This document shows positions 17,927 to 37,244 of a DNA stretch of 64,000 nucleotides, piece after piece. The stretch is from Mantamonas sphyraenae STR306 (lineage: Eukaryota; Protista; CRuMs), in assembly GCA_026936335.1 (NCBI GenBank), contig JAPMXV010000075.1:62001-126000 (forward strand), given 5' to 3'. The stretch's first letter is position 1; the number at the start of each line of letters is the position of its first letter. The notes under the pieces were generated by a model. It saw only the letters and a list, made by a program, of their open reading frames with translations, searched no databases and was not told the origin of the DNA. The translations under genes were made by a program, and so were the position numbers.

Positions 17927-17970
17927 GTTCGGGTGCGCGCGTTGGGGCAGGAGAAGAAGATTCGGCAAGG

Positions 17971-19144
17971 ATGAGCACGCTGGGATCGGCCAATGAAGAA
18001 GCCATGCGACTGTTTCGCATCTACCGGACGACCACCCAGATGCTGGTTGACCGTGGGTACTCAGTGACCAAGGACGACAAGAGCATGGACTTTGACAAGT
18101 TTACAGAGACGTTTGGCGAGTCACCGTCGTAGGTTGCACGCGAGAGAGGGTTGAATGGAGGGGTGGATGGGTGGAGGGGTGGAAAGGGGGGTGGGTGGGT
18201 GGAGAGAGAGAGGGAGAGGCGGGAGCAGGAGAGAGGAGCGGACGCTCACACGCTCCCACACGCGCACACACGTACAGGCGAGACGCAATGGTGCGGTTCA
18301 ACACGCGCAGGGACGATCTGAGTGAAAAGATCTTTGTGTTTTACTGCGAAAGCCTGAAAGTGCGCGTGAGCGACGTGAAAGGGTGGGTTTTGTGTGAGGA
18401 GGCAAGGCGGGAGGAAGTGGTGCTCGAGAGGCTGACACACAAAAGGGGAATGGGGGGCCAACCACACACACACACATGCACCGATGGGAATGGATGGTGG
18501 GGAGGACAGGTATTGGGAGAGGATGAAGGATGCAGGGGTGACGAGGGCGGTGCTTGTGTACAGGAGCGGCATCACGTCGATGGCCAAGCAGGGGATTCAG
18601 CGTTTGGCGCCGGATTTCCACATTGAGATCTTTCAGGAGAGCGAACTGCTGGTGAACATTACAGAGCATGTGCTTGTGCCGAAGCATGTGGTGCTGGACA
18701 ACGACACAAAGGCGTTGCTGCTGAAGAAGTACAAGATCAAGCAGACTCAGCTGCCGCGCATTCAGAACACGGACCCTGTGGCGCGGTACTTTGGGGTGAG
18801 TGTGGAGAGAGATGTGGCGAGGGAAGGAGAGAGGAGGAGGCAGAGAGGCATGGGAAGTGGGGTTGGATGGGGTGAGGGAATGGTGGACAGGGAAGGAAGG
18901 GAAGGAGAAAGGGGGAGAGCTGAAGAGTGGTTTGGGGGGTGTGGGGGAAAGAACATGTATGGCTGACACAGTGTGGGTGTATGGGGCCATTGTGTGTGTA
19001 TGTGGGAACGTATGCTGGTTGACTGTGCTTGTGTGTGTGTGTGCACGACAGCTGCGACCTGGACAGGTGGTCAAGATCATCCGACCGAGCGAGACGGCAG
19101 GGCGGTATGTGACGTACCGATTTGTGTGTCCGTCGCGTGCGTAA
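17971..19144 (+). CDS. RPB5: RNA polymerases I/II/III shared subunit RPB5, copy 1
   Basis: RLFRIYRTTTQMLVDRGY; FQESELLVNITEHVLVPKH; QLPRIQNTDPVARYFG; GQVVKIIRPSETAGRYVTYR. Three introns. Confidence 0.97.
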
Positions 19145-19294
19145 GGAGAGCCACAGAGGGGAAGAATGGAGACGAACGAGAGAGAGCGTGTGGTGTGGTA
19201 GGGTGGTGGGAGTGGGAGTGGAGGAATGGAAACTGCAGGACGGCAGAACGCACCTGCTTCAGCACCAACAACCAAACCCACCAAATCACAATCG

Positions 19295-19909
19295 ATGTTT
19301 GGGCGTGTGAGCAAGGGTAGCTCGAGGAGCGGAGCAGTGATTACGCGTGCGCTGAATGGGACGCTGGGCCAAAACAGCCGCCACGCAAGCAGCAGCAGCA
19401 GCGTGTCGGGTGTGCCAGAGCCGCCGATTGCAACGTACGATCCCGCGGTCGACTCCAGGGGAGCACAGGAGCTTGGCGTACGTGTGGCGTGGCTGTGAGG
19501 AGGGGGGATGTGAGAATGTGTGTGCAGCCCGTCGGTGCGCAGGAGACTTGGAGCCCCGTGGAGCCGTCACGGCCCCTCAGAGGGTCGGCCGGCCCACGGC
19601 AGCGCGCTCGGCAAAATTCCGCGGGCGGGCTGTGCAGGAACACAAAGACACGGGGGAGGGATAGGATGGCATGGAACTGACAGGAGGACATGTCACACAC
19701 ACACACAGCTGCACGAGGAAGTCGAGGTGCTGGGCATTTGGGGTCTGGACAAGGACAACACCATCAAGGCGGGCGAATCGCTCGTCACTCTCGTGGGTGC
19801 ACTTGCATTCATGGGCTTTGCCGCCGCTATGGTCAAACCGGCCAAGAAGCCGACAGCTGACCGCGTCCTGCCGTACAACAATGCAGCCAAAGCACTGGGC
19901 AAGGAATGA
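19295..19909 (+). CDS. Putative mitochondrial complex I accessory subunit, NDUFB8-like
   Basis: Presequence MFGRVSKGSSRSGAVITRAL. Last exon LHEEVEVLGIW, one TM, then PAKKPTADRVLPYNNAAKALG resembles NDUFB8 C-termini. Middle exon(s) unresolved. Confidence 0.5.
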
Positions 19910-19950
19910 AACAACTGGCATTCACTCTTTGGCACTCGCACATGGCCTCT

Positions 19951-21582
19951 TTAGGCCAGGAACTGACCCAGGGCAGCCTGGATGGTCTTGTGAGCCGATT
20001 GCAGGGCGGTGGAATCCGTAGAGGCCGGGTAGTACATGTTGGAGCAGTGAGCACCCTGAGGGATGATCACCAGCTGCAGGTTCTTGTTGGCAGGCGGTGT
20101 GGTGATGCTCAAGGCATGCCACGGGTCGATGAGTCCGTTCACCATCACCGTGTTGCTGCTGCCCAGCATCTTGCCTCCGTAGTAGTCGTTGGTAAAGTCC
20201 ACGTGCGGCATGCGGAAGGCGTCGCCATACACATCTGCACACATCTGGTTCCAATACTCAATGGGGAACTGGTCGCCAAAGGGCTGGCTGGAAGAGTCGG
20301 CGTCGCTGGATTGGAAGAAGCCAAACTCGCGGCAGGATTGCCAGATCCACAGACGCATGGCTGTGGCTCCCGGGTTGGCCGTCGACGTGTTCTTCAACTG
20401 GTTCACCTGCGATGCATACGACACATCCAAGCAAGGCTGGCCCTGCAGCAGCAACTCGTTCACTGCAGCCAGCTGGGCAACTGCATCGTCACCTGCACCC
20501 ATGATGTCGCACAGGGCGGAGATGGTGATGTTGGACGAAGGGATGTCCCGGTTGTACTGCACCACACCCATGAACAGACCGGCAATGGCCGACATGAACG
20601 TGGCACGCGATGCACTGTCGTCCTTGAGGGCATCACACGTCTTGAACTGGTTCTGCAGCTGAGTGCGCCCTGCATCCGTGCCATACAGGCTCGTGATCTG
20701 GTTCACACCCATGGCAATCTTGGGCACACATGATTGTCCACCCATTGTCGTCAGCGATGCCTGCACCACCTGCAGGTACGCACTAAAGTCGTTGACGGCT
20801 TGCACCGGAGCAGACGACGAAATAGCACCCACCACCTTGTGCGGGTACTTGAGACGGTACCACGCAGACAGTGCTCCCGGGTAGCTTCCACCAAAGCACA
20901 CCCACTTGTTCGCATCCGTCATCCCATACTTGCTCTGCAGGAACGATTGCAGCGTATCCAGATCAGCCAACGCCTGCTGGCTGCTCAGGAAGCGCAGGTT
21001 GGGTGTGTCCACTCCACTGGCAGGGAACGATTCACCGTAGAAACGATGCTCAATGTCCACCAGCAGGGCGTTGTACTGCTTGGCGTAGTAGGCAATGGCG
21101 CCAACCTGCAGGAAGGCACCGTTCTCAGGGCCCTCGCCTCCGATCATGAGGAACACAGGGCCGTTCTCCTTGTCCCAGTACTGGTCATTGACATAGTACT
21201 TCTGCTGGAACGTGGCGTTGTTCTCGCTGTCGTAGTGGTCCAGCGTCTGCGTAAAGAACTGCTTCGGCAGGTCGTCTTTGCGTGGACACCCGTCAGTTTC
21301 CGGGCCCCTGCACGCTCTGCACCCCTCTCCACGCCCTCCTCCTCCCACTTACCCAGTCCCTCTGTCTTCAGAGAGCTCACCATCATGTCTGTGTGCGTTT
21401 ATCCGACTGTGTCAGAGCCTGGGTGCCGCGAGAGCCGTTTGCAAGTGGGCATCATCTTCCTCTCTCTCTCCCGTTCCTCCCCCCCACGCTGAACACTCAC
21501 CGTAATGCGTGCGGGGAAACGGCAGTGCAAGCGCAGCCTGGACACACACGAGTGCAATGAGCACACTCACAGCAATCTTCAT
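19951..21582 (-). CDS. Serine peptidase family S28 (PRSS16/Pro-X carboxypeptidase-like), copy 1
   Basis: Signal peptide MKIAVSVLIALVCVQAALA; FTQTLDHYD, GPVFLMIGGEG, EHRFYGES, GGSYPG (catalytic Ser), NGLIDPWH, GAHC. Confidence 0.95.
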
Positions 21583-21710
21583 TGGTGTGGGTGAAAATGT
21601 GTTTGTCTTGGACGCCGGTGAGCACCCGTTCACAATCACATCTCCAATGGTGACCCATTGACCAGCAACGAGGGGGACGCCCCCCAGAAACCGACCGTTC
21701 ACCAACGATG

Positions 21711-21914
21711 AAACCGTTGAGCCAAGAACGCGTTCCACACTTTCATTGTTCAGTTACAGGCTGTTCGGTTCAAATTGAAACTTTGTGTGAGGCAGCGCAA
21801 AGGGTTTGGTCTCGGTGACGGAAAAGGAAAACTTACATCATTACAACCCTGTGCTAGGTGGTATACACCCAATGTTTGGTTGGTTGGTTGGTTGACGGTT
21901 CTGGTGCCCCGTCC
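21711..21914 (-). ncRNA. Candidate Fanzor omegaRNA scaffold region
   Basis: Non-coding, relatively AT-rich ~200 nt directly 3' of the Fanzor stop, ending where host-duplication homology begins. Ends can pair (GAACCGU 21901-21895 with ACGGUUU 21717-21711). Positional inference from Fanzor/TnpB biology. Confidence 0.4.
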
Positions 21915-24900
21915 TCAGCCTGCACTCGAATTCGCCTCCAGGTTCTGTGCCTCGCCGTCCACGTTCTCTGGCAGACCAATCTTGCTTCGGAACGCCCTGC
22001 CGATCTGACTCCGTTGCCAAACCTTGGTCATGCACCATATGGTGTGACCGCGAAGGGCAGCGTACACCTTGTTCGCGATTGCTTGTGCGCTGGCAAAGTC
22101 CCGGTTCCGGTGCATTTTGCATCGCGTACAGTACTTGACACGCGCGGTGCGGGCATTGCCGTGCTTGCTCTCGTGCACACTGCCACATGTGGGACATCTC
22201 AGCGTCGTATTGCACTCGTTCACACGCACAACAATCATGTTGTGCTTGGCCAGCTCCTCCAGTTTCTTCACTCCACCACGGCCGCCCTTGAATCCGTCAC
22301 CGATGCACAGCAGTGTGATGCGTCGCAGTTGCCCCTTCTCCAACTGCATCTTCTCGGTCGCACGCACCTGAGCCAGCCAGTGTTCCCTCATCTTTCGAAT
22401 CCTGTTCTTCTGTTCCCGTCGATGATGCGTCTTTCTGTCTCCACTTTGGCTGTCCTCCTCCTGTTCCTTCTGGATGACAGCTGATGAAGCTTCTTCAGCC
22501 GTCAAGGCCCTGCACTGATGGCGCAGCGTGCGTCCCACCCGTGCCTCCGAATGCCTCTCGGCAAACAGTCCTGCTCTTTTCACGCGCAGCTCCTGCATCC
22601 GTTCACGCACCCTCCTTGAAAGTGTTGCATTGTCTTTCTTGAGACCCACCTTGCGTTCCATGGCTCCGAGTGATGGGGGCGAAAACCGCCACGCGGTGGC
22701 AAACTGGAGCAGGTAGCCATCCTGCACGGTTTCTTTCAGCGGGATGCATAGAGCTGACGGTGCGTTCGCAATGCCGGGATCTGCTCCAAGGAATTGTAAG
22801 CGCTGATTGGCGCCTTGACTGAGAGCGAGGAGGCGGGAAAAGGACGAAACCACGCCATGAGGTCGTCTTGAGTGTTCCAGGTTCCGTGGACACAATCCCA
22901 AGGCGATGAGCTTTCCAGCAGAGTGCGGAAGCCATTTGTGGAGTAGTGCGTGCACAGCCTTGGTCTGCGCTCCCACATCCCCATCTCCATCTGCGAGTTC
23001 CCGCACAGGTTGCAACTGATGCTCGTGCGAGGCAACAAGCATGCCCACCTGGCAGAGCCTGATAGCCACAGCTGCCACGCGCTCAAGAAGGCGCCTGGTG
23101 TTCTGCTGCTCCTCGGTGTGGGCGTCTGAGTCTCGTCCTCTCTTCCCCTTGGCTGCCACCTTGCCAACCGCTGAGTAGTTGTATCTGGCGATGCTATGGG
23201 TGACAAACGGCGCAGAAAGCGCAGGCCTGGGCTCTGGTGCATCTTCCAGCAGCGTGTAATCCCCCCGCAGAAACTGCAGTAGATCGGCATCGTCGATTCT
23301 TTCTGTGTCCTCGTATGACGTTGCAGTGGGGTTGCGGAGCAGGTTGATGCAGGCACGAAGCGTTGGAAACAAGGAGAGGCGCTGGTGCGGCACAAGAAGG
23401 TGCTCCAGCATGAAAAGTCGTCGCTGATCGGCCCCGGATGGAATCGTCCAGTGACGCACGTTTGCCATATGTACGTTGGAGAAGAGACGTACAGAGAGGA
23501 AGCCATCGTTGAAGAAGGGTGTTTTGGCCACACGAGCCGCGTGTGTGGGTGAAAGGATGTCATACACGTTGAAGGAGGAAAAAAGCAGTGCATCGGCATA
23601 AGCACCAAGCTCCTCGTCAGCTATGTGCGCACCTTCCTCGTACGTGACCACGCGCGCTGATTTGTTTACACATGTCTGTGCACATACATGCATGGCCTGA
23701 ATCGATGTGGAGGCGAACAGCGAGCGCCTGCTGCTGCCTCCACCGCCTCCGCTGCTGCTGCTGGTGCTGCTGCTGCTGCTCTGAACCACTTCCTCCTGAT
23801 TCGTATTCATCATATGCCACGCCAGCGATGCACGCATGGCATGAACGTGTGCCTGGTTGTCAGCCCGACGGGCACCCCGTACAAACTCGTGCACACCACA
23901 GTGACACGCTGTCGTACTGTCCCAACACTCCTGCGGCGGAGGTGCATCGGAACAGCCGCCGGGTAGTGATGTGGCAGCACCACAGAGGACAGACCAGGCT
24001 AACAACTTGCTGTCCAAGTCCACCTCCTTGTCCCCGCAAATGCGCAGCAGATTTCTCGCCAATGTGGTGGTTGCCCACCGCCCAAAAATCAACTCCCGTT
24101 CGGCCGCCAGCTGGATCTCGAAAGAGTGTTGGTCCCCATAGAGCTTTCGGGTTGAGTTGCACTCCTTGGCAAGCTCGTAGAAGCACCGCAGTGCAACGAG
24201 TGGTGACTTGGTTTCCAGGCTGCGCAGCGAGCTGAACTGCTTGAGAGACACGTTCCCTACGTCCAGTAGAACCTTCTCAACAGCCCGTTTGCATGCTCGG
24301 TGCATTGTGGTGTCTGTAGGGCCGTCGTCGCCGTCGTCGTCGGGGTTTGCGTGGCGTGTCAGAAACCCCACCACGTCTTTGCGCTCTAGCTGCGGGGAAG
24401 CAGCCACAACAAGGTCAGCCAGGTTGTCGTTGGCCTGTGTGGTCAACATTACTCTCCAGCTGGTGAGGATGTGAGCAGCAGCCCGATTGCACAGAGTTGA
24501 AAACACACCTGCTGGCAGACCTTCCAGATGCACGGGCGCTCTCGCCGCCGTCTCGTCCAAACCGTCCACGTACTCAGCCCGAATGCATCCGTCTTGTTGC
24601 CTTTGCAGTATGAGATCTGTGTTTGCAGCGATCAAGCCGTTTGTTGTGGAGCCCGCGGCGGAAACAACGGACACCTCGTCGGGTGGCCTCAAATACAGAC
24701 GGTCATTCCTGATGACAAGGCTGCGTGACAACATACCTTCCACCGTTTTGTCTGGTTCAACCTGGGCGCACTGTAGCAGGTCTCGCTGGATGGCAACCAC
24801 AACACCAAACACGTTCTGGATTTGGATCAGCTGGCTGACGTCCTTCTCGGTCACCAGCGCTTTGTTGCGGAGAGTGGACATAGATCCCAGTTCCACAATG

Positions 24901-27566
24901 CACGAGGAGGAGGCAAGGTACTCTGCATGCGTCTCGTCGAGGTTTGGCGTGGTGAGTCCAAAAAAGACAGACCACTCTGCGTCGTCTGCCTGCTCGTTGT
25001 CGGGCAGGATGGTGTCAATGACGTCGTCTAAGGACAGTACGCCCCCGTCTCCGTCTCCGTCGCCTTGGTCTTGGTCTTGTTCGTGCACACGGAAGACTCG
25101 GTCAATGGCGGCAGATGTGTTCTCTTGCCACTCCTGTGACTCGTCTACAGAAGGGGGTGTCGCTCCAAGGATAGATGCTAGATCCTTGGTTGCACCAACA
25201 AACACGTCCTTGGACATGTCAACACCCTCTTCCTCCAGAGCAGCGACAAGCCGGCTTTGTTTGAGCAGTGCCTGGCGGAGATCTGGGTGAAGCACACCGC
25301 GAAGCGATGCAATGGACTTGCGAATCCTATCCTTGGGTAGGTACTGTGTGCAAAGACTCGTCCATCTCTTCGCGTTGACCATGTTCGAGTACAACATCGA
25401 CGGGCACGTGTAGTTGGCGGCCGTGCCGCTAGCCTGCGCCTGCGCCGTGCCGCTAGCCTGCGCCTGCGCCGTGCCAGTATCCTGGGCCGTGCCGCCAGCC
25501 TGCGCCGTGCCAGTATGCTGCTCCTGCGCCGTGCCAGTATGCTGCTCCTGCGCCGTGCCGTTCGCCTGCGCCGCAGCAACCAACCCCTCCATCCCAATGG
25601 CCCGTGTGTCCACAGACACCTTGTACTGGTGCCTATCTTTGTGATCGATGTCTGCAAAGTGGACGTTGCGCTTGTCGTTGGCGCGCTGGCACTCCCAGCG
25701 CGCCATGGTGGATTCACGCAGATCATGGAGAACGTGCGTGCTCAGCGTGTCACTGCCTGTAAGTGCCCCCGCTCGCCGACAAACCTCACCAGCGGGAAGG
25801 ACATGAGCTGTTGACATGTCTGAGTCATACTCGACCGCAAACTGCCGTACAAACGCATTCAAGAGCGACATGACCCCTCCGTCGTCATCAAAGTGCACTG
25901 CGCCTAGGACGTTGGCCTCTGGCAAAGTCTCCTCAACAACCACGTCCTTCACGTCCCCATCAAACACACGCCCCCACGCATGGAGGGACGTGAGCCGCTC
26001 AATAGCGTCGTCGTCGAACCCAAGGACCTGGAGGTGGAGCTTGACCCAGCGAAGGTAGTGGAGAGCATGCTGTTGCAGGAGAAGCATGTGCTCGGACGCC
26101 GGCTGCTTACCAGACGTGCCACGCAGGAGGGTGGCGACCGACAAGTCATTGTGGACAATGCTGGCGTAAACGTGCGTGAGAAGATCGCCATCCTCAAGCA
26201 GATCTCGCAGTGACTCCGTGTCCAAGCTCAGCAGATTGCGACTTGGTGGTCGTACTGTGGCTTGGATGTCACTGGAGAGCAGCATTGCAGCGGCCAAGCT
26301 CATCAGTTGGTTGTCCATGTCTTGCACAAGTGCTGTCCCGAGAGTAGGATGCAGGAGGTAAACCGGCTGTGTGGTCTGGTTGAATCCCCAATCGCTATCG
26401 TGGAGAGTGATGATAAAGGCGATGTCCTCCTCCTTGTCGTACACTCGCATGACCGCGTCTTTGACCTGATCTGCAAGCACCGGTTGATTCTGAAGATCGG
26501 CCAGCTCGTTCCCGAACTCGTACTCCTGGTGCTCCATGGACAAATGTTTCGCAGCGTGGTACATGGCAATGTGGGCCTGTCCCGTGAGACATAGTCTATG
26601 TCCTTGGCCAGCGCCGTGCGCCGAGAACGGGGCTGCGTCTTCTTTCCGGGAAACATCACGGCGGAGTCGCTGCATAGCCTCTACCTGCACCATGGTTCCC
26701 TCAATGCGCCGAAGGTGTGTCCCATAGCTGATGGATTGTGCTTCCTCGTCTGCCATCTCGGGCTTCACATCGCAGCAGAGGACGTACCGCAATCGGTTGT
26801 CATTCTTGGCGTCCGCAATGTCAATGCGCAGCTCGGTGTTGGCCTTCTCAACCTCTAAGCACCGCTGTACCAACTCGCGCACCTCGTTCTTGTTCAGGTC
26901 TGTGGTACGACAAGCCTCCTCGAGCACCGTGTAGCAGACGGCGGAGACGTCGACCAAAACAATCACCCATTCCACCGGCGTCCCCCCAGCGCCAGGCGTC
27001 AGCATCTCCTCCTGGAAACCAATGTCAAGCATGGACATGATATCCCTCTGTCGTTTCGCCTTCCCGCTCCCTCCTTGCCGTCCCGTATGAAGCTCAACGT
27101 GCTGCTTTTTGGCGGAGATTTTTGAGCTGTTGGAAATTGCATCCCGCACTTGCTTTTTGTCCTGCCATACCGGATTACCAAGGTCATCGCCATCTACATC
27201 CACCTGTTCCCCACCATCCACCCGTTCCGTATCCATTCCATCGTCAGTCGACGCGTCGATAGCCTCCTGAAACATGTGGACGCTCCCAGCACTTCGGCGG
27301 CTCCTCCTTCGCCCGACTGCAACCTCCTCCTGGCCCTTTTCGACCACCGGGTCCTTTTCACGCAGTACACACGCACTGCAGAACCTATTCACCAGATGCA
27401 CATCGTTGTTGCATCCACAGGAATCGCATTTGTGCCGCCGTGACCGCTTTCGGTGCGGAAGCGTCCAGTGCAACTGCAGAGTCGCCTCATCTTCGTCGTT
27501 GTCGACGATGATGTCGCTGTGGCCACGTTTTCGTGTACGGTTGTATTCTATGTTGCGCTCACTCAT
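21915..27566 (-). CDS. Giant Fanzor1/TnpB-family RNA-guided nuclease with long N-terminal extension (putative FEN1/XPG-like PIN domain)
   Basis: Intronless 1,883-aa ORF from GCCACC-ATG. RuvC-I FLGADPGI (D1596), LCIGDG, RuvC-II VVRVNECNTT (E1784), CPTC..CTRC, RuvC-III RNRDFASAQAI (D1823). Confidence 0.88.
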   Translation of the reverse strand: MSERNIEYNRTRKRGHSDIIVDNDEDEATLQLHWTLPHRKRSRRHKCDSCGCNNDVHLVNRFCSACVLREKDPVVEKGQEEVAVGRRRSRRSAGSVHMFQEAIDASTDDGMDTERVDGGEQVDVDGDDLGNPVWQDKKQVRDAISNSSKISAKKQHVELHTGRQGGSGKAKRQRDIMSMLDIGFQEEMLTPGAGGTPVEWVIVLVDVSAVCYTVLEEACRTTDLNKNEVRELVQRCLEVEKANTELRIDIADAKNDNRLRYVLCCDVKPEMADEEAQSISYGTHLRRIEGTMVQVEAMQRLRRDVSRKEDAAPFSAHGAGQGHRLCLTGQAHIAMYHAAKHLSMEHQEYEFGNELADLQNQPVLADQVKDAVMRVYDKEEDIAFIITLHDSDWGFNQTTQPVYLLHPTLGTALVQDMDNQLMSLAAAMLLSSDIQATVRPPSRNLLSLDTESLRDLLEDGDLLTHVYASIVHNDLSVATLLRGTSGKQPASEHMLLLQQHALHYLRWVKLHLQVLGFDDDAIERLTSLHAWGRVFDGDVKDVVVEETLPEANVLGAVHFDDDGGVMSLLNAFVRQFAVEYDSDMSTAHVLPAGEVCRRAGALTGSDTLSTHVLHDLRESTMARWECQRANDKRNVHFADIDHKDRHQYKVSVDTRAIGMEGLVAAAQANGTAQEQHTGTAQEQHTGTAQAGGTAQDTGTAQAQASGTAQAQASGTAANYTCPSMLYSNMVNAKRWTSLCTQYLPKDRIRKSIASLRGVLHPDLRQALLKQSRLVAALEEEGVDMSKDVFVGATKDLASILGATPPSVDESQEWQENTSAAIDRVFRVHEQDQDQGDGDGDGGVLSLDDVIDTILPDNEQADDAEWSVFFGLTTPNLDETHAEYLASSSCIVELGSMSTLRNKALVTEKDVSQLIQIQNVFGVVVAIQRDLLQCAQVEPDKTVEGMLSRSLVIRNDRLYLRPPDEVSVVSAAGSTTNGLIAANTDLILQRQQDGCIRAEYVDGLDETAARAPVHLEGLPAGVFSTLCNRAAAHILTSWRVMLTTQANDNLADLVVAASPQLERKDVVGFLTRHANPDDDGDDGPTDTTMHRACKRAVEKVLLDVGNVSLKQFSSLRSLETKSPLVALRCFYELAKECNSTRKLYGDQHSFEIQLAAERELIFGRWATTTLARNLLRICGDKEVDLDSKLLAWSVLCGAATSLPGGCSDAPPPQECWDSTTACHCGVHEFVRGARRADNQAHVHAMRASLAWHMMNTNQEEVVQSSSSSTSSSSGGGGGSSRRSLFASTSIQAMHVCAQTCVNKSARVVTYEEGAHIADEELGAYADALLFSSFNVYDILSPTHAARVAKTPFFNDGFLSVRLFSNVHMANVRHWTIPSGADQRRLFMLEHLLVPHQRLSLFPTLRACINLLRNPTATSYEDTERIDDADLLQFLRGDYTLLEDAPEPRPALSAPFVTHSIARYNYSAVGKVAAKGKRGRDSDAHTEEQQNTRRLLERVAAVAIRLCQVGMLVASHEHQLQPVRELADGDGDVGAQTKAVHALLHKWLPHSAGKLIALGLCPRNLEHSRRPHGVVSSFSRLLALSQGANQRLQFLGADPGIANAPSALCIPLKETVQDGYLLQFATAWRFSPPSLGAMERKVGLKKDNATLSRRVRERMQELRVKRAGLFAERHSEARVGRTLRHQCRALTAEEASSAVIQKEQEEDSQSGDRKTHHRREQKNRIRKMREHWLAQVRATEKMQLEKGQLRRITLLCIGDGFKGGRGGVKKLEELAKHNMIVVRVNECNTTLRCPTCGSVHESKHGNARTARVKYCTRCKMHRNRDFASAQAIANKVYAALRGHTIWCMTKVWQRSQIGRAFRSKIGLPENVDGEAQNLEANSSAG
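25420..25570 (-). repeat. In-frame 18-24-nt tandem repeat (GTAQ-x) inside the Fanzor ORF
   Basis: Units encode GTAQEQHT x2, GTAQAG, GTAQDT, GTAQAQAS x2. Recurring gccgtgcc on the + strand. Confidence 0.9.
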
Positions 27567-27579
27567 GGTGGCTTTTTCT

Positions 27580-27673
27580 CTTGGGCATGGTGGCGCACGA
27601 TCCACACACTGTGGACTGCCACCATGCCCAAGGCAGGTGACCTAAATCATGTGTGAAGGACGCGTAGCGTCCT
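27580..27673. promoter_or_regulatory. Two hairpins upstream of the Fanzor start
   Basis: Perfect 15-bp inverted repeat CTTGGGCATGGTGGC (27580-27594) / GCCACCATGCCCAAG (27618-27632) with inner TCCACA/TGTGGA. Second stem AGGACGC-gta-GCGTCCT (27657-27673). Function unknown. Confidence 0.6.
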
Positions 27674-27762
27674 ATATGCTGCTCATTGGCTCATACACCA
27701 CGAGAACACCTATCAGAACACACGCGGAGACGTTGCCGACACTGAATCAACTTGACCCGAAT

Positions 27763-29332
27763 TCACTGTAATTCATCGCTGCTGTTGCTGCTGCTGCTGC
27801 TGCTCTCCTTCCGCGGGTACACATCCTCCTTGGGTTCCCAGTTCTTTGCAAAGGTCTCTGCGACAAGGAGGGGAAACACAAGCGTGGCCTCGGCACACAC
27901 CTTGACGGGTTCCGCGTAGATGCTGATCTTCCCCCAGGTGACAGCCTCGGACGGAGCAGCGCCGCTGTCGCTACCGTCAAACTCGTGTGCAGTGTTGATG
28001 TACACGGCCCAGTCAGCGCCGTTGCGCATGAGGTTTGCATTGCAGATGTGGTGCTTGACAATGCCGCCGCCGAGGATGATCATGCCACTGTGGGCAGCCT
28101 TGACGGCAATGTCGTTGATGCGACGGATGTCTTGGGCAATGTCCACCACCAGTCCCTCGTTCTGGTAGCTCTGGAAGTAGATCATGTCTCCGATGGAGCC
28201 GTCGGTGATCGCCGGGCAAAACACAGGGATGTTGTTCTTGTGGGCCCAGTAGTAGACGCTGTCCTCGTTGTCAATCTCCTTTCCCAGACGATCGATGATC
28301 TTGGAGGGTGACCACACGACGCCGTCCTCCTGCTGTTCCTTGAGCATGGCATTGAGGATGGGCATCATAAACTCCTCAAACTTGACGTAGTTGTCATTGG
28401 GCACAATCAGGTTGCCCAGGCGGTTGAGTCCCTTGAGACGCATGTCCTTGCCATTCAGGTTGAATGCGCCGTGGTAGTGCGGCGTCATGCACTTCATGAA
28501 ATCCTCCTCGATCCCACCCCCCGTCGTCACAATCGCATCCACCATCTTGTGTTCCACCAGGTACCGAATCACCTCGCGCAGACCGCTGCTGATCATGTTG
28601 GACGTGTATCCCAGAAAGATGGTCGCCCGTGTCTTTTTGCGCAGGTCCGGATCGACGATGGAATCGCGGTCCGTCACCTCTTCGTCGCTCAGGCGCCATT
28701 TGATCTGCGTGCACGGGTCCTGTGTCAATCAATGTCTTTGTGTGCAATCCATGGACCCTGGGGACCCTTTGTGCATGCTTTCCGGCAGCGTACCATGTCA
28801 TTCACTCGGTCCATGGCCTTGCCCAAATGCGTGGACTGGAAGCCCGTTGAGATGTAGTGCTTCATGATCTGCTCGTAGTCCACGCCCTGGTTAAAGTCGT
28901 ACCCAAACACGGTGGGGCTGTTCCAATGAGGCGTGTGTCAGCGTGTGTGGGCAGGTGAGTGGTGTGTGTGTGGAAGACCTGTCACACACGCAAGGGTGCG
29001 CCCAGTTCGGCGAAACACCGCACTCCGCGAGAGCAGCCAGCCAGCCCACAGAGGTACGAGTGGACGTGTGCACGTGGCATACACACAACCACAGGACCAT
29101 GCCACACATAAAGATGCACACGAGCAACGTACTGGTCGTCCGGCATGGCCACACTCTGCACAAGCACAGCCTCAGTGGCCTTTTCAGGGCGATTGTCCGC
29201 AAAGAGTTCCTTGCTACTGACCCCTTTCGACTCTGTGCTTCCCTGTTCCTGTTCCTGTTCCTGCTTTTGCTCCTGCTCCTGCTCCTGTTCCTGTTCAGTG
29301 GATGGTGTTGTTTCCTTGTCGGTGGTACTCAT
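27763..29332 (-). CDS. DHPS: Deoxyhypusine synthase
   Basis: [89 protein letters not shown]. Multi-exon. Confidence 0.97.
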
Positions 29333-32300: not shown

Positions 32301-32513
32301 GTGCACGGTGACGAATCGTTCTACGGTGTGCACACAGCCCACCTGAGCAAGAGCCCAAGTGTGGACTATGGTCACCGAATGCGACAGGCAGCTGCAAGGG
32401 AGGCACAGAATGGGAATCGCTTGCTCAAGGCGCGGCGGTCCATTGTTGGTGAACGGTCGTTTTCGGGGGCGTCCCCCTCGTTGCTGGTCAATGGGTCACC
32501 ATTGGACATGTGA
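29388..32513 (+). CDS. Long coiled-coil hypothetical protein
   Basis: Spliced ORFs with WWNIQESVRSALLAL and repeated L..KAD/KVD heptad motifs. Its last ~70 nt are included in the duplicated segment. Confidence 0.7.
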
Positions 32514-32566
32514 TTGTGAACGGGTGCTCACCGGCGTCCAAGACAAACACATTTTCACCCACACCA

Positions 32567-34204
32567 ATGAAGATTGCTGTGAGTGTGCTCATTGCACTCG
32601 TGTGTGTCCAGGCTGTGCTTGCACTGCCGTTTCCCCGCACGCATTACGGTGAGTGTTCAGCGTGTGGGGGCGGAACGGGAGAGAGAGAGGAAGATGATGC
32701 CCACTTGCAAACGGCTCTCGCGGCACCCAGGCTCTGACACAGTCGGATAAACGCACACAGACATGATGGTGAGCTCTCTGAAGACAGAGGGACTGGGTAA
32801 GTGGGAGGAGGAGGGCGTGGAGAGGGGTGCAGAGCGTGCAGGGGCCCGGAAACTGACGGGTGTCCACGCAAAGACGACCTGCCGAAGCAGTTCTTTACGC
32901 AGACGCTGGACCACTACGACAGCGAGAACAACGCCACGTTCCAGCAGAAGTACTATGTCAATGACCAGTACTGGGACAAGGAGAACGGCCCTGTGTTCCT
33001 CATGATCGGAGGCGAGGGTCCTGAGAACGGGAAGTTCATCCAGGTCGGCATGATCAACCTCTACGCACAGAAGTACAACGCCCTGCTGGTGGACATTGAG
33101 CATCGTTTCTACGGTGAATCGTTCCCTGCCAGTGGAGTGGACACACCCAACCTGCGCTTCCTGAGCAGCCAGCAGGCGTTGGCTGATCTGGATACGCTGC
33201 AATCGTTCCTGCAGAGCAAGTATGGGATGACGGATGCGAACAAGTGGGTGTGCTTTGGTGGGAGCTACCCGGGAGCACTGTCTGCGTGGTACCGTCTCAA
33301 GTACCCGCACAAGGTGGTGGGTGCTATTTCGTCGTCTGCTCCGGTGCAAGCCGTCAACGACTTTAGTGCGTACCTGCAGGTGGTGCAGGCATCGCTGACG
33401 ACAATGGGTGGACAAGCATGTGTGCCCAAGATTGCCATGGGTGTGAACCAGATCACGAGCCTGTATGGCACGGATGCAGGGCGCACTCAGCTGCAGAGCC
33501 AGTTCAAGACGTGTGATGCCCTCAAGGACGACAGTGCATCGCGTGCCACGTTCATGTCGGCCATTGCCGGTCTGTTCATGGGTGTGGTGCAGTACAACAG
33601 GGATAACCGCCCCGGAAGCAATGTGACCGTGTCGATGCTGTGCGACATCATGGGTGCGGGTGACGACGCAGTTGCCCAGCTGGCTGCAGTGAACGAGTTG
33701 CTGCTGCAGGGTCAGCCTTGCTTGGATGTGTCGTATGCATCGCAGGTGAACCAGTTGCAGAACACGTCGACGGCCAACCCGGGAGCCACAGCCATGCGTC
33801 TGTGGATCTGGCAATCCTGCCGCGAGTTTGGCTTCTTCCAATCCAGCGACGCCGACTCGTCCAGCCAGCCCTTTGGCGACCAGTTCCCCATTGAGTATTG
33901 GAACCAGATGTGTGCAGATGTGTATGGCGACGCCTTCCGCATGCCGCACGTGGACTTTACCAACGACTACTACGGAGGCAAGATGCTGGGCAGCAGCAAC
34001 ACGGTGATGGTGAACGGACTCATCGACCCGTGGCATGCCTTGAGCATCACCACACCGCCTGCCAACAAGAACCTGCAGCTGGTGGTGATCCCTGAGGGTG
34101 CACACTGCTCCAACATGTACCCGCCGACGGATCACGACTCGCCAGCGCTGCAGGCGGCTCACAAGACCATCGAGACGGCCATTGGACAGTTCATTGGTGC
34201 TTGA
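32567..34204 (+). CDS. Serine peptidase family S28, copy 2
   Basis: Same motifs as copy 1 and near-identical except three divergent patches. Confidence 0.95.
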
Positions 34205-34296
34205 TCGTGCTTGGTGGGGGGGTCCCAAGGAATGAAAAGTGGACAGCGTGCTGAAAGTAGGTGGATATTACATACATGGGCACCCAACTGGGAGAC

Positions 34297-35559
34297 CTAT
34301 GTTGGTGGTGATGGCCAGAATTTCGGGTTGTGAGGGTGATTGTCCCAATCGAATGTGGTTGATGGACAGCGGAGAGCATGAGGATACGCCTCTCCCATCA
34401 GGTCGTGCTCCTTCACAGGCCCGTTCAAATGGATGCCAAAGCACTGAAACTGCCATTGCATGTCAAATTGTGACCGCAGGTGCGAATGGCAATTGAGCCA
34501 GGGGAACTTTGTCGTTTCTGGGATGAAGCGCACAAACTCGGAACTTCGGTTTCCCATTGGGCCGACCAAACGATCAAGTTCAGCACTGAAGCAATTTGAG
34601 TAGGCTTGGTTGACCTTCAGGTATCCCTCGCGATCCTGTGACAAGTACCAGCTTGGGAAAGGAATCTCCAGAAACGGCCCACACGTGTTGTTGTAGGCAG
34701 ACACCCCTGCGACTGATTTCTCTGCACCCAACATCACCAACAGGGCTTCCATCCACGCCCCGTTGTCGATTTGGACAGTGTACCGCTTTCGCCAGCGCAG
34801 AAAGTTGGCAAAGTACGCTTCGATCCATCCGCCGTCACGTCGGCGTGCGTACAGATCCGCATTCTCATTGATTCCCCAGTGTGGGATTGGCGCGTGGTCT
34901 GTCATTGTGAATGGTCTTCCGTCATACAGCTTCTCCAGCTGGAAGCTCAACCACAGCGGGTTGAGGGCGTAGTCGACCCCCGTGAAGAACACGACATCGT
35001 ATTCCTGCAGCAAAGGCACCATGCCGAACGCCCATGCCCAAACAGGTGCCTCGCTATACCACCTGTGAGAGCTCTTGAGTGCAGCAGCGACATCGTCCGG
35101 AAGAGAAACATCCTTTTCGTGTAGCCTGGGGTCGACGAACCTTGAGATCAACAAGTCGTAGCCGTGCAAATGTGCGTAGCACGCACGCCAGAAGTTCTCC
35201 TTTGCATATGTGGTGAAGGTGTCATTGGTCCCTGTTGCGAACAGCAGCACTTTCAACGGGCTGCTCTCGCGTTTGTGGTTGCGAACGATGGAAGCCATGG
35301 CCGCCTCGCTGCCATTGCTCGCCACTCTGGCTTCCTCCACATACTGTGCTTCGACACCGGTAAGAGCTATCCAGTTTATGTGCGTGTCTTCCTTGGGTTT
35401 TGGTTTGGGTTTGATCGTTGGCTGCAAGGGCCCTGTGGAAGGATTTGCATCGGTTGCAATTTGTCCCTCGGTGTCCTTTTCTGTGGCCGGCACGAGCACC
35501 AGTATTAGGCTGATCAGGGTAACCAGCACAAGCAAAACCACGATCGCCAGTCGGCGCAT
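34297..35559 (-). CDS. Intronless type II membrane glycosyltransferase-like protein (GT34/GMA12-MNN10-like)
   Basis: N-terminal TM anchor MRRLAIVVLLVLVTLISLILVLV, a stem, then YAKENFWRACYAHLHGYDL and LQEYDVVFFTGVDYAL as in GT34-like enzymes. Confidence 0.55.
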   Translation of the reverse strand: MRRLAIVVLLVLVTLISLILVLVPATEKDTEGQIATDANPSTGPLQPTIKPKPKPKEDTHINWIALTGVEAQYVEEARVASNGSEAAMASIVRNHKRESSPLKVLLFATGTNDTFTTYAKENFWRACYAHLHGYDLLISRFVDPRLHEKDVSLPDDVAAALKSSHRWYSEAPVWAWAFGMVPLLQEYDVVFFTGVDYALNPLWLSFQLEKLYDGRPFTMTDHAPIPHWGINENADLYARRRDGGWIEAYFANFLRWRKRYTVQIDNGAWMEALLVMLGAEKSVAGVSAYNNTCGPFLEIPFPSWYLSQDREGYLKVNQAYSNCFSAELDRLVGPMGNRSSEFVRFIPETTKFPWLNCHSHLRSQFDMQWQFQCFGIHLNGPVKEHDLMGEAYPHALRCPSTTFDWDNHPHNPKFWPSPPT

Positions 35560-35561
35560 GG

Positions 35562-35831
35562 TCAACGACTTGCCTTGGGCACATGTGCGCGATGTGTGGC
35601 AGAACTTGTCCCGTGTTCAGGGACGCCAATTGTCTCAAGAAGGAACTTGCAATGCTCCTGTGCTCCCCTGGAGTCGACCGCGGGATCGTACGTTGCAATC
35701 GGCGGCTCTGGCACACCCGACACGCTGCTGCTGCTGCTTGCGTGGCGGCTGTTTTGGCCCAGCGTCCCATTCAGCGCACGCGTAATCACTGCTCCGCTCC
35801 TCGAGCTACCCTTGCTCACACGCCCAAACAT
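35562..35831 (-). pseudogene. Truncated/chimeric 5' copy of the NDUFB8-like gene
   Basis: Matches 19295-19472 (MFGRVSKG...SRGAQE), then runs into unrelated sequence and stops at 35562. Confidence 0.7.
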
Positions 35832-35982
35832 CGATTGTGATTGGTGGGTTTGGTTGGTTGTGCTGAAGCAGAAGTGCGTCCTGCCGTCCTGCGGTTTCCA
35901 TTCCTCCACTCCCACTCCCACCACCCTACCACACCACACGCTCTCTCTCTTTCGTCTCCATTCTTCCCCTCTGTGGCTCTCC

Positions 35983-37147
35983 TTACGCACGCGACGGACA
36001 CACAAATCGGTACGTCACATACCGCCCTGCCGTCTCGCTCGGTCGGATGATCTTGACCACCTGTCCAGGTCGCAGCTGTCGTGCACACACACACACAAGC
36101 ACAGTCAACCAGCATACGTTCCCACATACACACACAATGGCCCCATACACCCACACTGTGTCAGCCATACATGTCCCCCCCACCCCCCCCAAACCACTCT
36201 CCAGCTCTCCCCCTTTCTCCTTCCCTTCCTTCCCTGTCCACCATTCCCTCACCCCATCCAACCCCACTCCCCATGCCTCTCTGCCTCCTCCTCCCTCCTT
36301 CCCTCGCCACATCTCTCTCCACACTCACCCCAAAGTACCGCGCCACAGGGTCCGTGTTCTGAATGCGCGGCAGCTGAGTCTGCTTGATCTTGTACTTCTT
36401 CAGCAGCAACGCCTTTGTGTCGTTGTCCAGCACCACATGCTTCGGCACAAGCACATGCTCTGTAATGTTCACCAGCAGTTCGCTCTCCTGAAAGATCTCA
36501 ATGTGGAAATCCGGCGCCAAACGCTGAATCCCCTGCTTGGCCATCGACGTGATGCCGCTCCTGTACACAAGCACCGCCCTCGTCACCCCTGCATCCTTCA
36601 TCCTCTCCCAATACCTGTCCTCCCCACCATCCATTCCCATCGGTGCATGTGTGTGGTTGGCCCCCCATTCCCCTCTTGTGTGTCAGCCTCTCGAGCACCA
36701 CTTCCTCCCGCCTTGCCTCCTCACACAAAACCCACCCTTTCACGTCGCTCACGCGCACTTTCAGGCTTTCGCAGTAAAACACAAAGATCTTTTCACTCAG
36801 ATCGTCCCTGCGCGTGTTGAACCGCACCATTGCGTCTCGCCTGTACGTGTGTGCGCGTGTGGGAGTGTGTGAGCGTCCGCTCCTCTCTCCTGTTCCCGCC
36901 TCTCCCTCTCTCTCCACCCACCCAACCCCCCCTGTCCACCCCTCCACCCATCCACCCATCCATCCAACCCTCTCTCGCGTGCAACCTACGACGGTGACTC
37001 GCCAAACGTCTCTGTAAACTTGTCAAAGTCCATGCTTTTGTCGTCCTTGGTCACTGAGTACCCACGGTCAACCAGCATCTGGGTGGTCGTCCGGTAGATG
37101 CGAAACAGTCGCATGGCTTCTTCATTGGCCGATCCCAGCGTGCTCAT
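35983..37147 (-). CDS. RPB5: RPB5, copy 2
   Basis: Coding sequence essentially identical to copy 1; introns differ by small indels and substitutions. Confidence 0.97.
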
Positions 37148-37244
37148 CCTTGCCGAATCTTCTTCTCCTGCCCCAACGCGCGCAGAGCACACGAGCGCCC
37201 GTGGAACCAAAGCCAAAGCAAACACTCCGAGCACACACTCAATC

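Follow-up and report, generated by a model that had tools for sequence, protein, structure and literature searches.

Fanzors are RNA-guided DNA nucleases of eukaryotes and relatives of CRISPR-Cas12. Published Fanzor1 proteins are mostly 600-700 amino acids (aa) long, up to about 800 (PMC11423790, PMC10711439). What, then, is a Fanzor-like protein of 1,883 aa made of, and does it belong to its host or to a mobile element? We address this question for a locus of Mantamonas sphyraenae STR306, a deep-branching protist of the supergroup CRuMs, that lies within a 64,000-nucleotide stretch of contig JAPMXV010000075.1 (GenBank assembly GCA_026936335.1, positions 62,001 to 126,000), referred to here as the window; coordinates are those of the window unless another locus is named. 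A first-pass annotation, made from the letters of the sequence, had described at this locus an uninterrupted, intronless open reading frame (ORF) for a giant Fanzor-like RNA-guided nuclease, either non-autonomous or domesticated. Its ORF coordinates were exact, and both the size and the Fanzor likeness stand. We find that the N-terminus of this Fanzor has captured a FEN/EXO1-like 5' nuclease and that the fused gene is the mobile cargo of a now non-autonomous element. The parts on which this rests are:

21915-27566, minus strand: fusion ORF (FEN-like nuclease-Fanzor), 1,883 aa, with no interruption and no joints across its span in raw-read contigs
25962-27074, minus strand: predicted FEN/EXO1/XRN-like (PIN superfamily) 5' nuclease, residues ~165-535, with D206, D266, E/D354, D366, D390, D392 and D433
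21918-24176, minus strand: Fanzor module, residues ~1130-1883 (start approximate), with a helical REC-like part, an NDG strand, the RuvC triad and a C4 zinc finger

Such an unusual gene might be an assembly artefact. However, this was ruled out because contigs of three public sequencing runs reproduce most of the copy-specific sequence as long pieces without joints. The fused gene is also apparently transcribed. Run X3, which is not recorded as RNA, apparently behaves like the study's one RNA-seq run: it has no contig at 27600-27799, its contig of the neighbouring gene for deoxyhypusine synthase (DHPS) is 1.2 kb versus 2.5 kb, its longest record is 20 kb, and its copy-specific contigs over the ORF have no splice joints. 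The ORF had further been set apart from its neighbours as poor in GT/CA repeats, a distinction that we could not reproduce (1-7 per 2 kb within the ORF versus 0-13 in the remainder of the window).

The C-terminal module has the RuvC triad residues of a Fanzor and is predicted to have the RuvC fold. D1596 in a DPG motif (22779-22781), E1784 (22215-22217) and D1823 (22098-22100) are where the first-pass annotation had placed them. E1784 stands seven residues before C1791 of the zinc finger (E1784-x6-C1791; C1791-x2-C1794...C1813-x2-C1816), and D1823 six residues past the last Cys. The R/K-rich helical stretch noted earlier between RuvC-I and RuvC-II is likewise present, and spans 188 residues. 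The Pfam profile PF07282 (Cas12f1-like TNB) matched at 27.3 bits against a cut-off of 26.3. The Bao-Jurka motif, D-X(125,275)-[TS][TS]-XX-C4 finger-X-RD (PMC3627910), was found in 13 of 13 full-length copies of the gene in this genome (see below), as was the combination of DPG at RuvC-I with an alternative Glu before the zinc finger (PMC10711439). Since all three RuvC residues are kept in the 13 full-length paralogues, the signature is far beyond chance. The ratio of non-synonymous to synonymous substitution rates (dN/dS) in the RuvC part was 0.18-0.26, and ESM Atlas features were 0.97 alike to TNB-domain clusters (707-804 aa) found in eukaryotes and large DNA viruses, with language-model neighbours spanning 625-804 aa.

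The position of the Glu beside the zinc finger had been taken as Fanzor1-type. This does not follow, as the DPG/Glu signature is common to Fanzor1, Fanzor2 and some TnpBs (PMC10711439, PMC10530073) and so does not by itself mean Fanzor1. Fanzor1 is nevertheless favoured by the host element with its terminal inverted repeats (TIRs) as well as its target-site duplications (TSDs), the 188-residue helical stretch, the language-model neighbours and the NDG strand at 1353-1355, which compares with TDG in the WED domain of Fanzor1 and occurs in 10 of 14 sequences (NGE, NAG or NAS in the others). Residence in a eukaryotic DDE transposon with TIRs and TSDs, not in IS607, is a trait of the Fanzor1 clade that this gene shares. 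No sequence match to the solved Fanzor1 chains in PDB was found, a word search of 5.8 billion proteins with the whole protein and with the RuvC region came back blank, and no relative was met in the viral contigs, metagenome contigs or phage DNA searched; such word-based blanks are weak evidence.

What fills the additional length? Sequence searches of PDB, Pfam and PHROGs left the N-terminal domain unidentified; the Pfam profiles XPG_I and 5_3_exonuc did not match it, and a HMMER profile built on it had no match among 1.84 billion protein representatives. XPG_I did match five other ORFs in the genome, none of them a copy of the fusion gene. The domain was identified by fold alone. An alignment of the copies contained invariant acidic motifs in residues 200-435, and AlphaFold2 applied to residues 155-1090 returned a confident domain at ~165-535, with a predicted local distance difference test score (pLDDT) mostly of 75-90. 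The top 36 Foldseek rows obtained with this N-terminal model were all FEN-superfamily 5' nucleases, none at an E-value of 0.001. In an unbiased VIA-align search T4 RNase H (Z 10.4) and EXO1 (Z 10.2) were matched and the best 15 rows were FEN-like, compared to Z 7.4 for the best unrelated row. A second look gave Z 11.4 for T4 RNase H (root-mean-square deviation 4.8, 231 aligned) and Z 10.9 for EXO1 (5.6, 277 aligned). XRN1/2 matched the fold at Z 8.4-9.4, and ESM Atlas gave a template-modelling score of 0.63 by target to a 5'-3' exonuclease cluster. The model thus has a PIN core with a helical arch and extended sheet (VIA-align Z 10.4-11.4).

FEN-like nucleases have an Asp after S1, S2 and S4, an Asp before H5, and two acidic residues before H4 (PMC5499597). 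D206, D266, D390, D392, E/D354 and D366 reproduce this six-residue pattern on the strands and helices of the model, mapped by secondary-structure position and not by residue-level superposition. D433 is placed as the Asp that follows a helix in the helix-two-turn-helix/helix-three-turn-helix (H2TH/H3TH) motif, but without the Gly-rich loop. Six Asp (D206, D266, D366, D390, D392 and D433) are invariant in 14 of 14 sequences and position 354 is acidic in all, the core pattern being invariant down to a relative of ~23% identity. By structure and motif, therefore, residues ~165-535 are assigned as a FEN-like fold with its acidic site, and much of the extra protein length is on this model a second nuclease domain. 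It could be argued that the protein is an ordinary Fanzor1 with added bulk, its N-terminal part having been captured as a passenger or serving as a scaffold for binding only; the very divergent sequence and the missing Pfam XPG/FEN match speak for this. We consider it very unlikely, however, given the invariance of the six Asp and a dN/dS of 0.18-0.24 in the FEN part, the lowest of the protein.

Having established the two nuclease parts, we turn to what carries them. The gene lies between the following ends:

21757-27768, minus strand: entire non-autonomous IS630/Tc1-mariner-type element, 6,012 bp, its ends being where the likeness of the 13 copies ceases
27747-27768, minus strand: left TIR, agreeing with the right TIR at 16/22 positions; the final codon of DHPS and its stop occupy the first 6 nt
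21757-21778, minus strand: right TIR, doubling as the 3' strand of the terminal stem of a predicted omegaRNA
27769-27770: left TA target-site duplication, within a Leu codon of DHPS; a left TA is found in 13/13 copies
21755-21756: right TA target-site duplication, found in 12/13 copies; its T pairs in the predicted terminal stem

The TIRs are imperfect, about 22 bp long, begin with CAG and match each other at 13-20 of 22 bases across copies; together with the TA duplication they are those of IS630/Tc1/mariner elements. We searched the genome (25.06 Mb in 78 contigs; the published assembly has 78 contigs and 59.19% GC, PMC10492846, and the window ~59% G+C) with both protein halves. This recovered 13 full-length copies, hence no lone gene, as well as a divergent frameshifted copy and a fragment. 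The 13 elements measure 5.8-7.1 kb, are flanked by TA and occupy unrelated sites. They form six subfamilies with 36-78% identity between and 96-98% within them, and the closest relatives of the window copy are 70% identical. Long open frames are retained in all 13, one with a displaced N-terminus, and dN/dS over the whole protein is about 0.27-0.31 between subfamilies, indicating purifying selection.

These observations bear on domestication as a host gene, which the first-pass annotation had left open. That the gene is intact, apparently transcribed and apparently on both homologues would suit such a role. TIRs, TA duplications, 13 dispersed copies at unrelated TA sites and groups of near-identical siblings largely refute it, leaving domestication barely credible; the fusion gene is therefore mobile cargo of a non-autonomous element, the other half of that earlier proposal. 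A viral or Polinton context was ruled out too, as the neighbours are host genes (DHPS and an S28 peptidase).

The annotation's failure to recognise a transposase holds for the window copy, which has no helix-turn-helix (HTH) plus DD(34)E transposase of its own, and for 11 of 13 copies overall, but not for sister copies L032 and L033, which retain a decayed one (broken HTH_32 and DDE_3 of IS630/Tc1 type) inside the left end, upstream of the nuclease. The element thus descends from IS630/Tc1-mariner: it is a TA-inserting TIR transposon in which the transposase has been lost and the Fanzor retained. Elsewhere in the genome there are about 20 more distant IS630/Tc1-like transposase matches in open frames of ~350-440 aa. 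One complete DD34E frame (L034:7653-8726, plus strand) lies beside the left end of the C44 copy, oriented away from it, and is a candidate helper or a nested insertion.

Excision of Tc1/mariner elements leaves footprints. The FEN-like domain might accordingly serve transposition or gap repair: once a transposase supplied in trans has excised the element, the domain would remove the footprints or flaps, independently of the RuvC cut, with the fusion serving only to localise it. The transposase frames just described, one of them complete, would supply the activity; an intact cognate transposase was not found in the genome, however, and the two nuclease parts have been conserved jointly in every copy, which makes this explanation distinctly unlikely. 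TIR pattern searches of the genome returned almost exclusively the ends of full copies. One clear orphan was seen, a right TIR end with TA and no family gene nearby (C69:55138-55156).

The copies also exchange sequence. Upstream of codon ~1660 the DNA of the window copy is 50-77% identical to the other subfamilies; codons 1760-1800 are 98-99% identical to L034/L040, and codons 1800-1840 are 97-98% identical to L032/L036, so that copies which elsewhere are ~57% alike form a patchwork over their last ~160 codons. Raw-read contigs over 22173-22290 reach 6-7 times single-copy depth, as expected if about seven copies share the tract. Together, the patchwork and the contig depth indicate that copies recombine near the right end. 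Gene conversion among the dispersed copies, concentrated towards the omegaRNA, has made patchworks of the 3' ends, and constraint from the overlapping RNA may add to their conservation.

This end of the element holds the putative RNA and its guide:

21755-21917, minus strand: predicted omegaRNA scaffold from stop codon to TSD, comprising a hairpin, a variable AACC spacer, a second hairpin and a terminal stem closing on TIR+TA
21740-21754, minus strand: predicted guide, the right flank, by analogy with Fanzor architecture (PMC10432273, PMC10711439)

The interval from stop codon to right TA is 147-174 nt and is conserved except in the length of the AACC spacer. Across three stems 99% of cells are paired, one pair swapping G-C/A-U in four rows; in the most divergent copy the fifth pair of the terminal stem is apparently swapped too, at a position falling in a gap of the covariation alignment. 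Because the rows are related, the pairing is supporting evidence and not proof. No Rfam family matched the region. Judged from sequence, these conserved 3' untranslated region (UTR) stems ending in the right TIR and TA would be an omegaRNA scaffold, with the right TA probably its last bases; a TSD within the scaffold has been described for Fanzor1 (PMC10711439). In copy L037 a near-perfect inverted copy of the right TIR (L037:7907-8053) gives a long terminal hairpin of -54.7 kcal/mol, versus about -31 in its siblings.

The predicted target would be the empty end of DHPS. Even when up to 3 mismatches were allowed, the empty-site 21-mer was not found in the assembly. A possible guide match at a distance of 10.7 kb was rejected: with the flank taken from the true right end, its likeness to that site is no better than chance, since 5% of real windows reach the score. 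On the left side of the insertions, the base 5' of TA is G in 0/13 copies, whereas 55% of the window's TA sites have G there; positions -2 and -3 are enriched in A. The right end of the element reads CTG-TA, that is, G before TA. A target-adjacent motif (TAM) of the form (A-rich)-notG-TA is therefore possible, and would provide a self/non-self rule, sparing occupied sites that end in CTG-TA.

How might such a protein benefit the element? The element itself, its copy number, the intact frames, purifying selection on both nuclease domains and the FEN-like fold with its acidic site are supported directly, and we infer the omegaRNA, the TAM, cleavage, DNA resection and homing. The best reading in our view is a homing nuclease with its own end-resection module, to which we give a probability of about one half. 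The 3' end of the mRNA would yield an omegaRNA whose scaffold terminates at the right TIR and TA and whose guide is the flank, so the ribonucleoprotein would target the same locus without the element, recognising an uninserted homologue or a cleanly excised site beside a TA-ending TAM. RuvC would cut this element-free locus, and the tethered 5' nuclease would trim 5' strands or flaps at the break to leave 3' tails. These would favour repair by homology, with the copy that bears the element as template, at the expense of end joining, and the 6-kb element would thereby be copied in. Put in this specific form, natural two-nuclease RNA-guided homing in which the Fanzor cuts the uninserted allele and the EXO1/FEN-like domain resects to force copying, the proposal is more tentative and falls a little short of an even chance. 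If true, it would account for 6-kb elements staying intact after loss of their transposase.

In favour of homing with resection, long frames have been kept in 13 TA-flanked copies while the transposase decays, and the scarcity of TIR ends without a full gene fits selection on each copy in cis. There are precedents for its parts, namely restorative homing by TnpB/IscB (PMC13565253), the participation of poxvirus G5, a FEN1-like nuclease, in homologous repair (PMC5499597), and increased Cas12f editing upon fusion to T5 exonuclease (PMC12337685).

Several points weigh on the other side. Activity, small RNA and TAM are predictions from sequence, and homing is established for bacterial TnpB/IscB (PMC13565253) and, according to a review, for no Fanzor yet. 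The C-terminal AlphaFold2 model has a mean pLDDT of 49, with a best Foldseek match to Cas12f at E 0.58 and no VIA-align match at Z>=5. About 600 residues are unexplained by fold or by Pfam/PHROG searches. A weaker flank bias also exists to the right of the element (3/13 copies have C at +1, p about 0.02), so the bias may, at least partly, be a preference of the transposase. Moreover, neither the spacing of the gateway Lys/Arg residues nor the Gly-rich H2TH/H3TH loop known from EXO1/FEN1 can be recognised in the alignment, so that substrate and polarity are putative; the substrate could also be RNA, given that XRN1/2 and T4 RNase H, which are RNases, share this fold.

Indeed, the same homing element could use its FEN-like domain on RNA, either by XRN-like 5'-to-3' trimming of the mRNA that frees the omegaRNA in cis or by T4 RNase H-like removal of R-loop RNA after cutting. 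T4 RNase H ties with EXO1 as top fold match and XRN1/2 follow at the Z-scores given above, the predicted omegaRNA is located in the mRNA 3' UTR, and the near absence of gene-less ghost elements suggests cis loading. However, ordinary Fanzors have no such domain and still mature their RNA in yeast (PMC10432273) and the extra domains specific to XRN are not seen; we therefore regard a role on RNA as rather unlikely.

The insertion site and the remaining parts of the locus are as follows:

27763-28728, minus strand: host DHPS (Pfam DS, 388 bits), one copy in the genome
27369-27428, minus strand: N-terminal Cys cluster C47, C52, C63 and C66, adjoined by basic runs resembling nuclear localisation signals (residues 39-44 and 86-91)
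25413-25565, minus strand: GTAQ-type repeat (minisatellite) linker, confined to the window copy in the alignment
24177-25949, minus strand: middle region, residues ~540-1130, pLDDT mostly <50

The earlier spacing of ~200 nt to the DHPS stop is right for the ATG of the fusion ORF (197 nt), but that stop is itself situated inside the left TIR of the element. The left TA falls inside a Leu codon, three codons ahead of the inferred original DHPS stop. With the flanks joined, the DHPS tail reads DELTEQ*; when the element is present it reads DELQ*, its Gln and stop coming from the TIR. This change is located after a poly-Ser tail and is probably harmless. In two DNA runs contig depth, a weak measure, is about the same for the element and for DHPS, and the ORF has three apparent allelic variants at 24966-24983 (two silent, one D862H). 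Depth and variants together suggest that the insertion is present on both homologues. An inverted duplication (17934-21710 / 32441-37184; S28 peptidase arm 95.5%, outer arm 97.8%) has its inner breakpoint 45 bp beyond the right TSD, near the expected Fanzor cut on the empty site, and is possibly a repair scar. Directly before the start codon, the 5' leader (27555-27625) contains a strong hairpin and an upstream ATG.

The Cys cluster is likely a zinc finger, its metal binding being predicted from the pattern, which is retained in the aligned subfamily representatives except the divergent L044. The middle region matched no Pfam or PHROG profile; it is under selection all the same, with a dN/dS of 0.21-0.42 between subfamilies over residues 541-1000.

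Relatives are found beyond the 13 copies. L044 (C52:257.6-263.6 kb), ~23-25% identical, keeps all FEN acidic residues but lacks the TIRs of this family, contains an expanded acidic repeat and is frameshifted immediately ahead of RuvC-II. There are about 20 further giant TNB-domain ORFs of other families (1,480-2,090 aa; e.g. C45:413799, C8:254712, C57:104843 and C43:65675) and four of ordinary size (633-849 aa); five of the giant ORFs sit ~6.5-7.3 kb downstream of IS630/Tc1-like transposase ORFs (373-423 aa). Among the other giant TNB ORFs, none was matched by the PF00443 (ubiquitin protease) profile; this neither confirms nor rules out a domain of that type. The element may be one member of a larger set of giant Fanzors that radiated in this lineage and that recruit enzymes able to steer repair.

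With 13 intact copies that each have their own predicted guide, a recombination patchwork at the guide end, a cultured host and public reads, this system makes the role of Fanzors in their own genomes testable. Our literature search, which excludes most subscription papers, found no paper with both Fanzor and XPG, no link between Fanzor and Mantamonas and no Fanzor report for CRuMs; among the titles and abstracts found, the pairing of a Fanzor with an exonuclease was met only in engineered editors and never as a natural fusion. Editors meant to favour deletion or homologous repair could draw on the design of the fusion.

How does this element compare to known systems? SPu-1-1p/SpuFz1, the Fanzor1 of the SPu-1 element, is 633 aa long in an element of ~2.1 kb with 30-33-bp TIRs and a TA TSD (PMC3627910, PMC10432273). 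Our element shares with it the non-autonomous TIR architecture, the TA duplication, a single ORF, the triad of DPG, Glu before the zinc finger and RD, and a structured RNA region (predicted here) from the stop codon to the right TIR. In contrast to Fanzor1, however, the protein is about three times the typical length, carries an N-terminal FEN-like nuclease, a Cys cluster and a ~600-aa region of unassigned fold, has ~240 residues from the WED-like NDG strand to RuvC-I, and is not accompanied by a swarm of ghost elements. Fanzors and TnpBs linked to Mariner/Tc1 and IS630 transposases (PMC3627910; the Klosneuvirinae IS630-linked TnpB, PMC10691335) resemble L032 and L033 in having HTH and DDE_3 upstream of the nuclease inside symmetrical ends, but here the transposase is broken in these two copies and unrecognisable in the other 11, and no relative was found in the viral contigs searched. 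Mariner/IS630-borne Fanzors are already known, and it is the natural fusion to a FEN-like nuclease that appears to be new. That nuclease shares its fold (Z up to 11.4) and acidic active-site pattern with T4 RNase H, EXO1, FEN1, XRN1/2, T5 exonuclease and poxvirus G5; it differs from them in that identity is about 10-14%, the arch and the H2TH motifs diverge, a loop of 10 residues separates the two acidic positions ahead of H4, and an RNA-guided nuclease is fused to it. The closest parallel in design is the engineered exoCasMINI (T5 exonuclease-Cas12f, PMC12337685), which ties a 5' exonuclease of the same superfamily to a RuvC nuclease of the TnpB family. Engineers made such a combination of 5' nuclease and RNA-guided RuvC to raise editing; here it has arisen in nature, is borne by a transposon, and holds ~600 further residues between its two domains.

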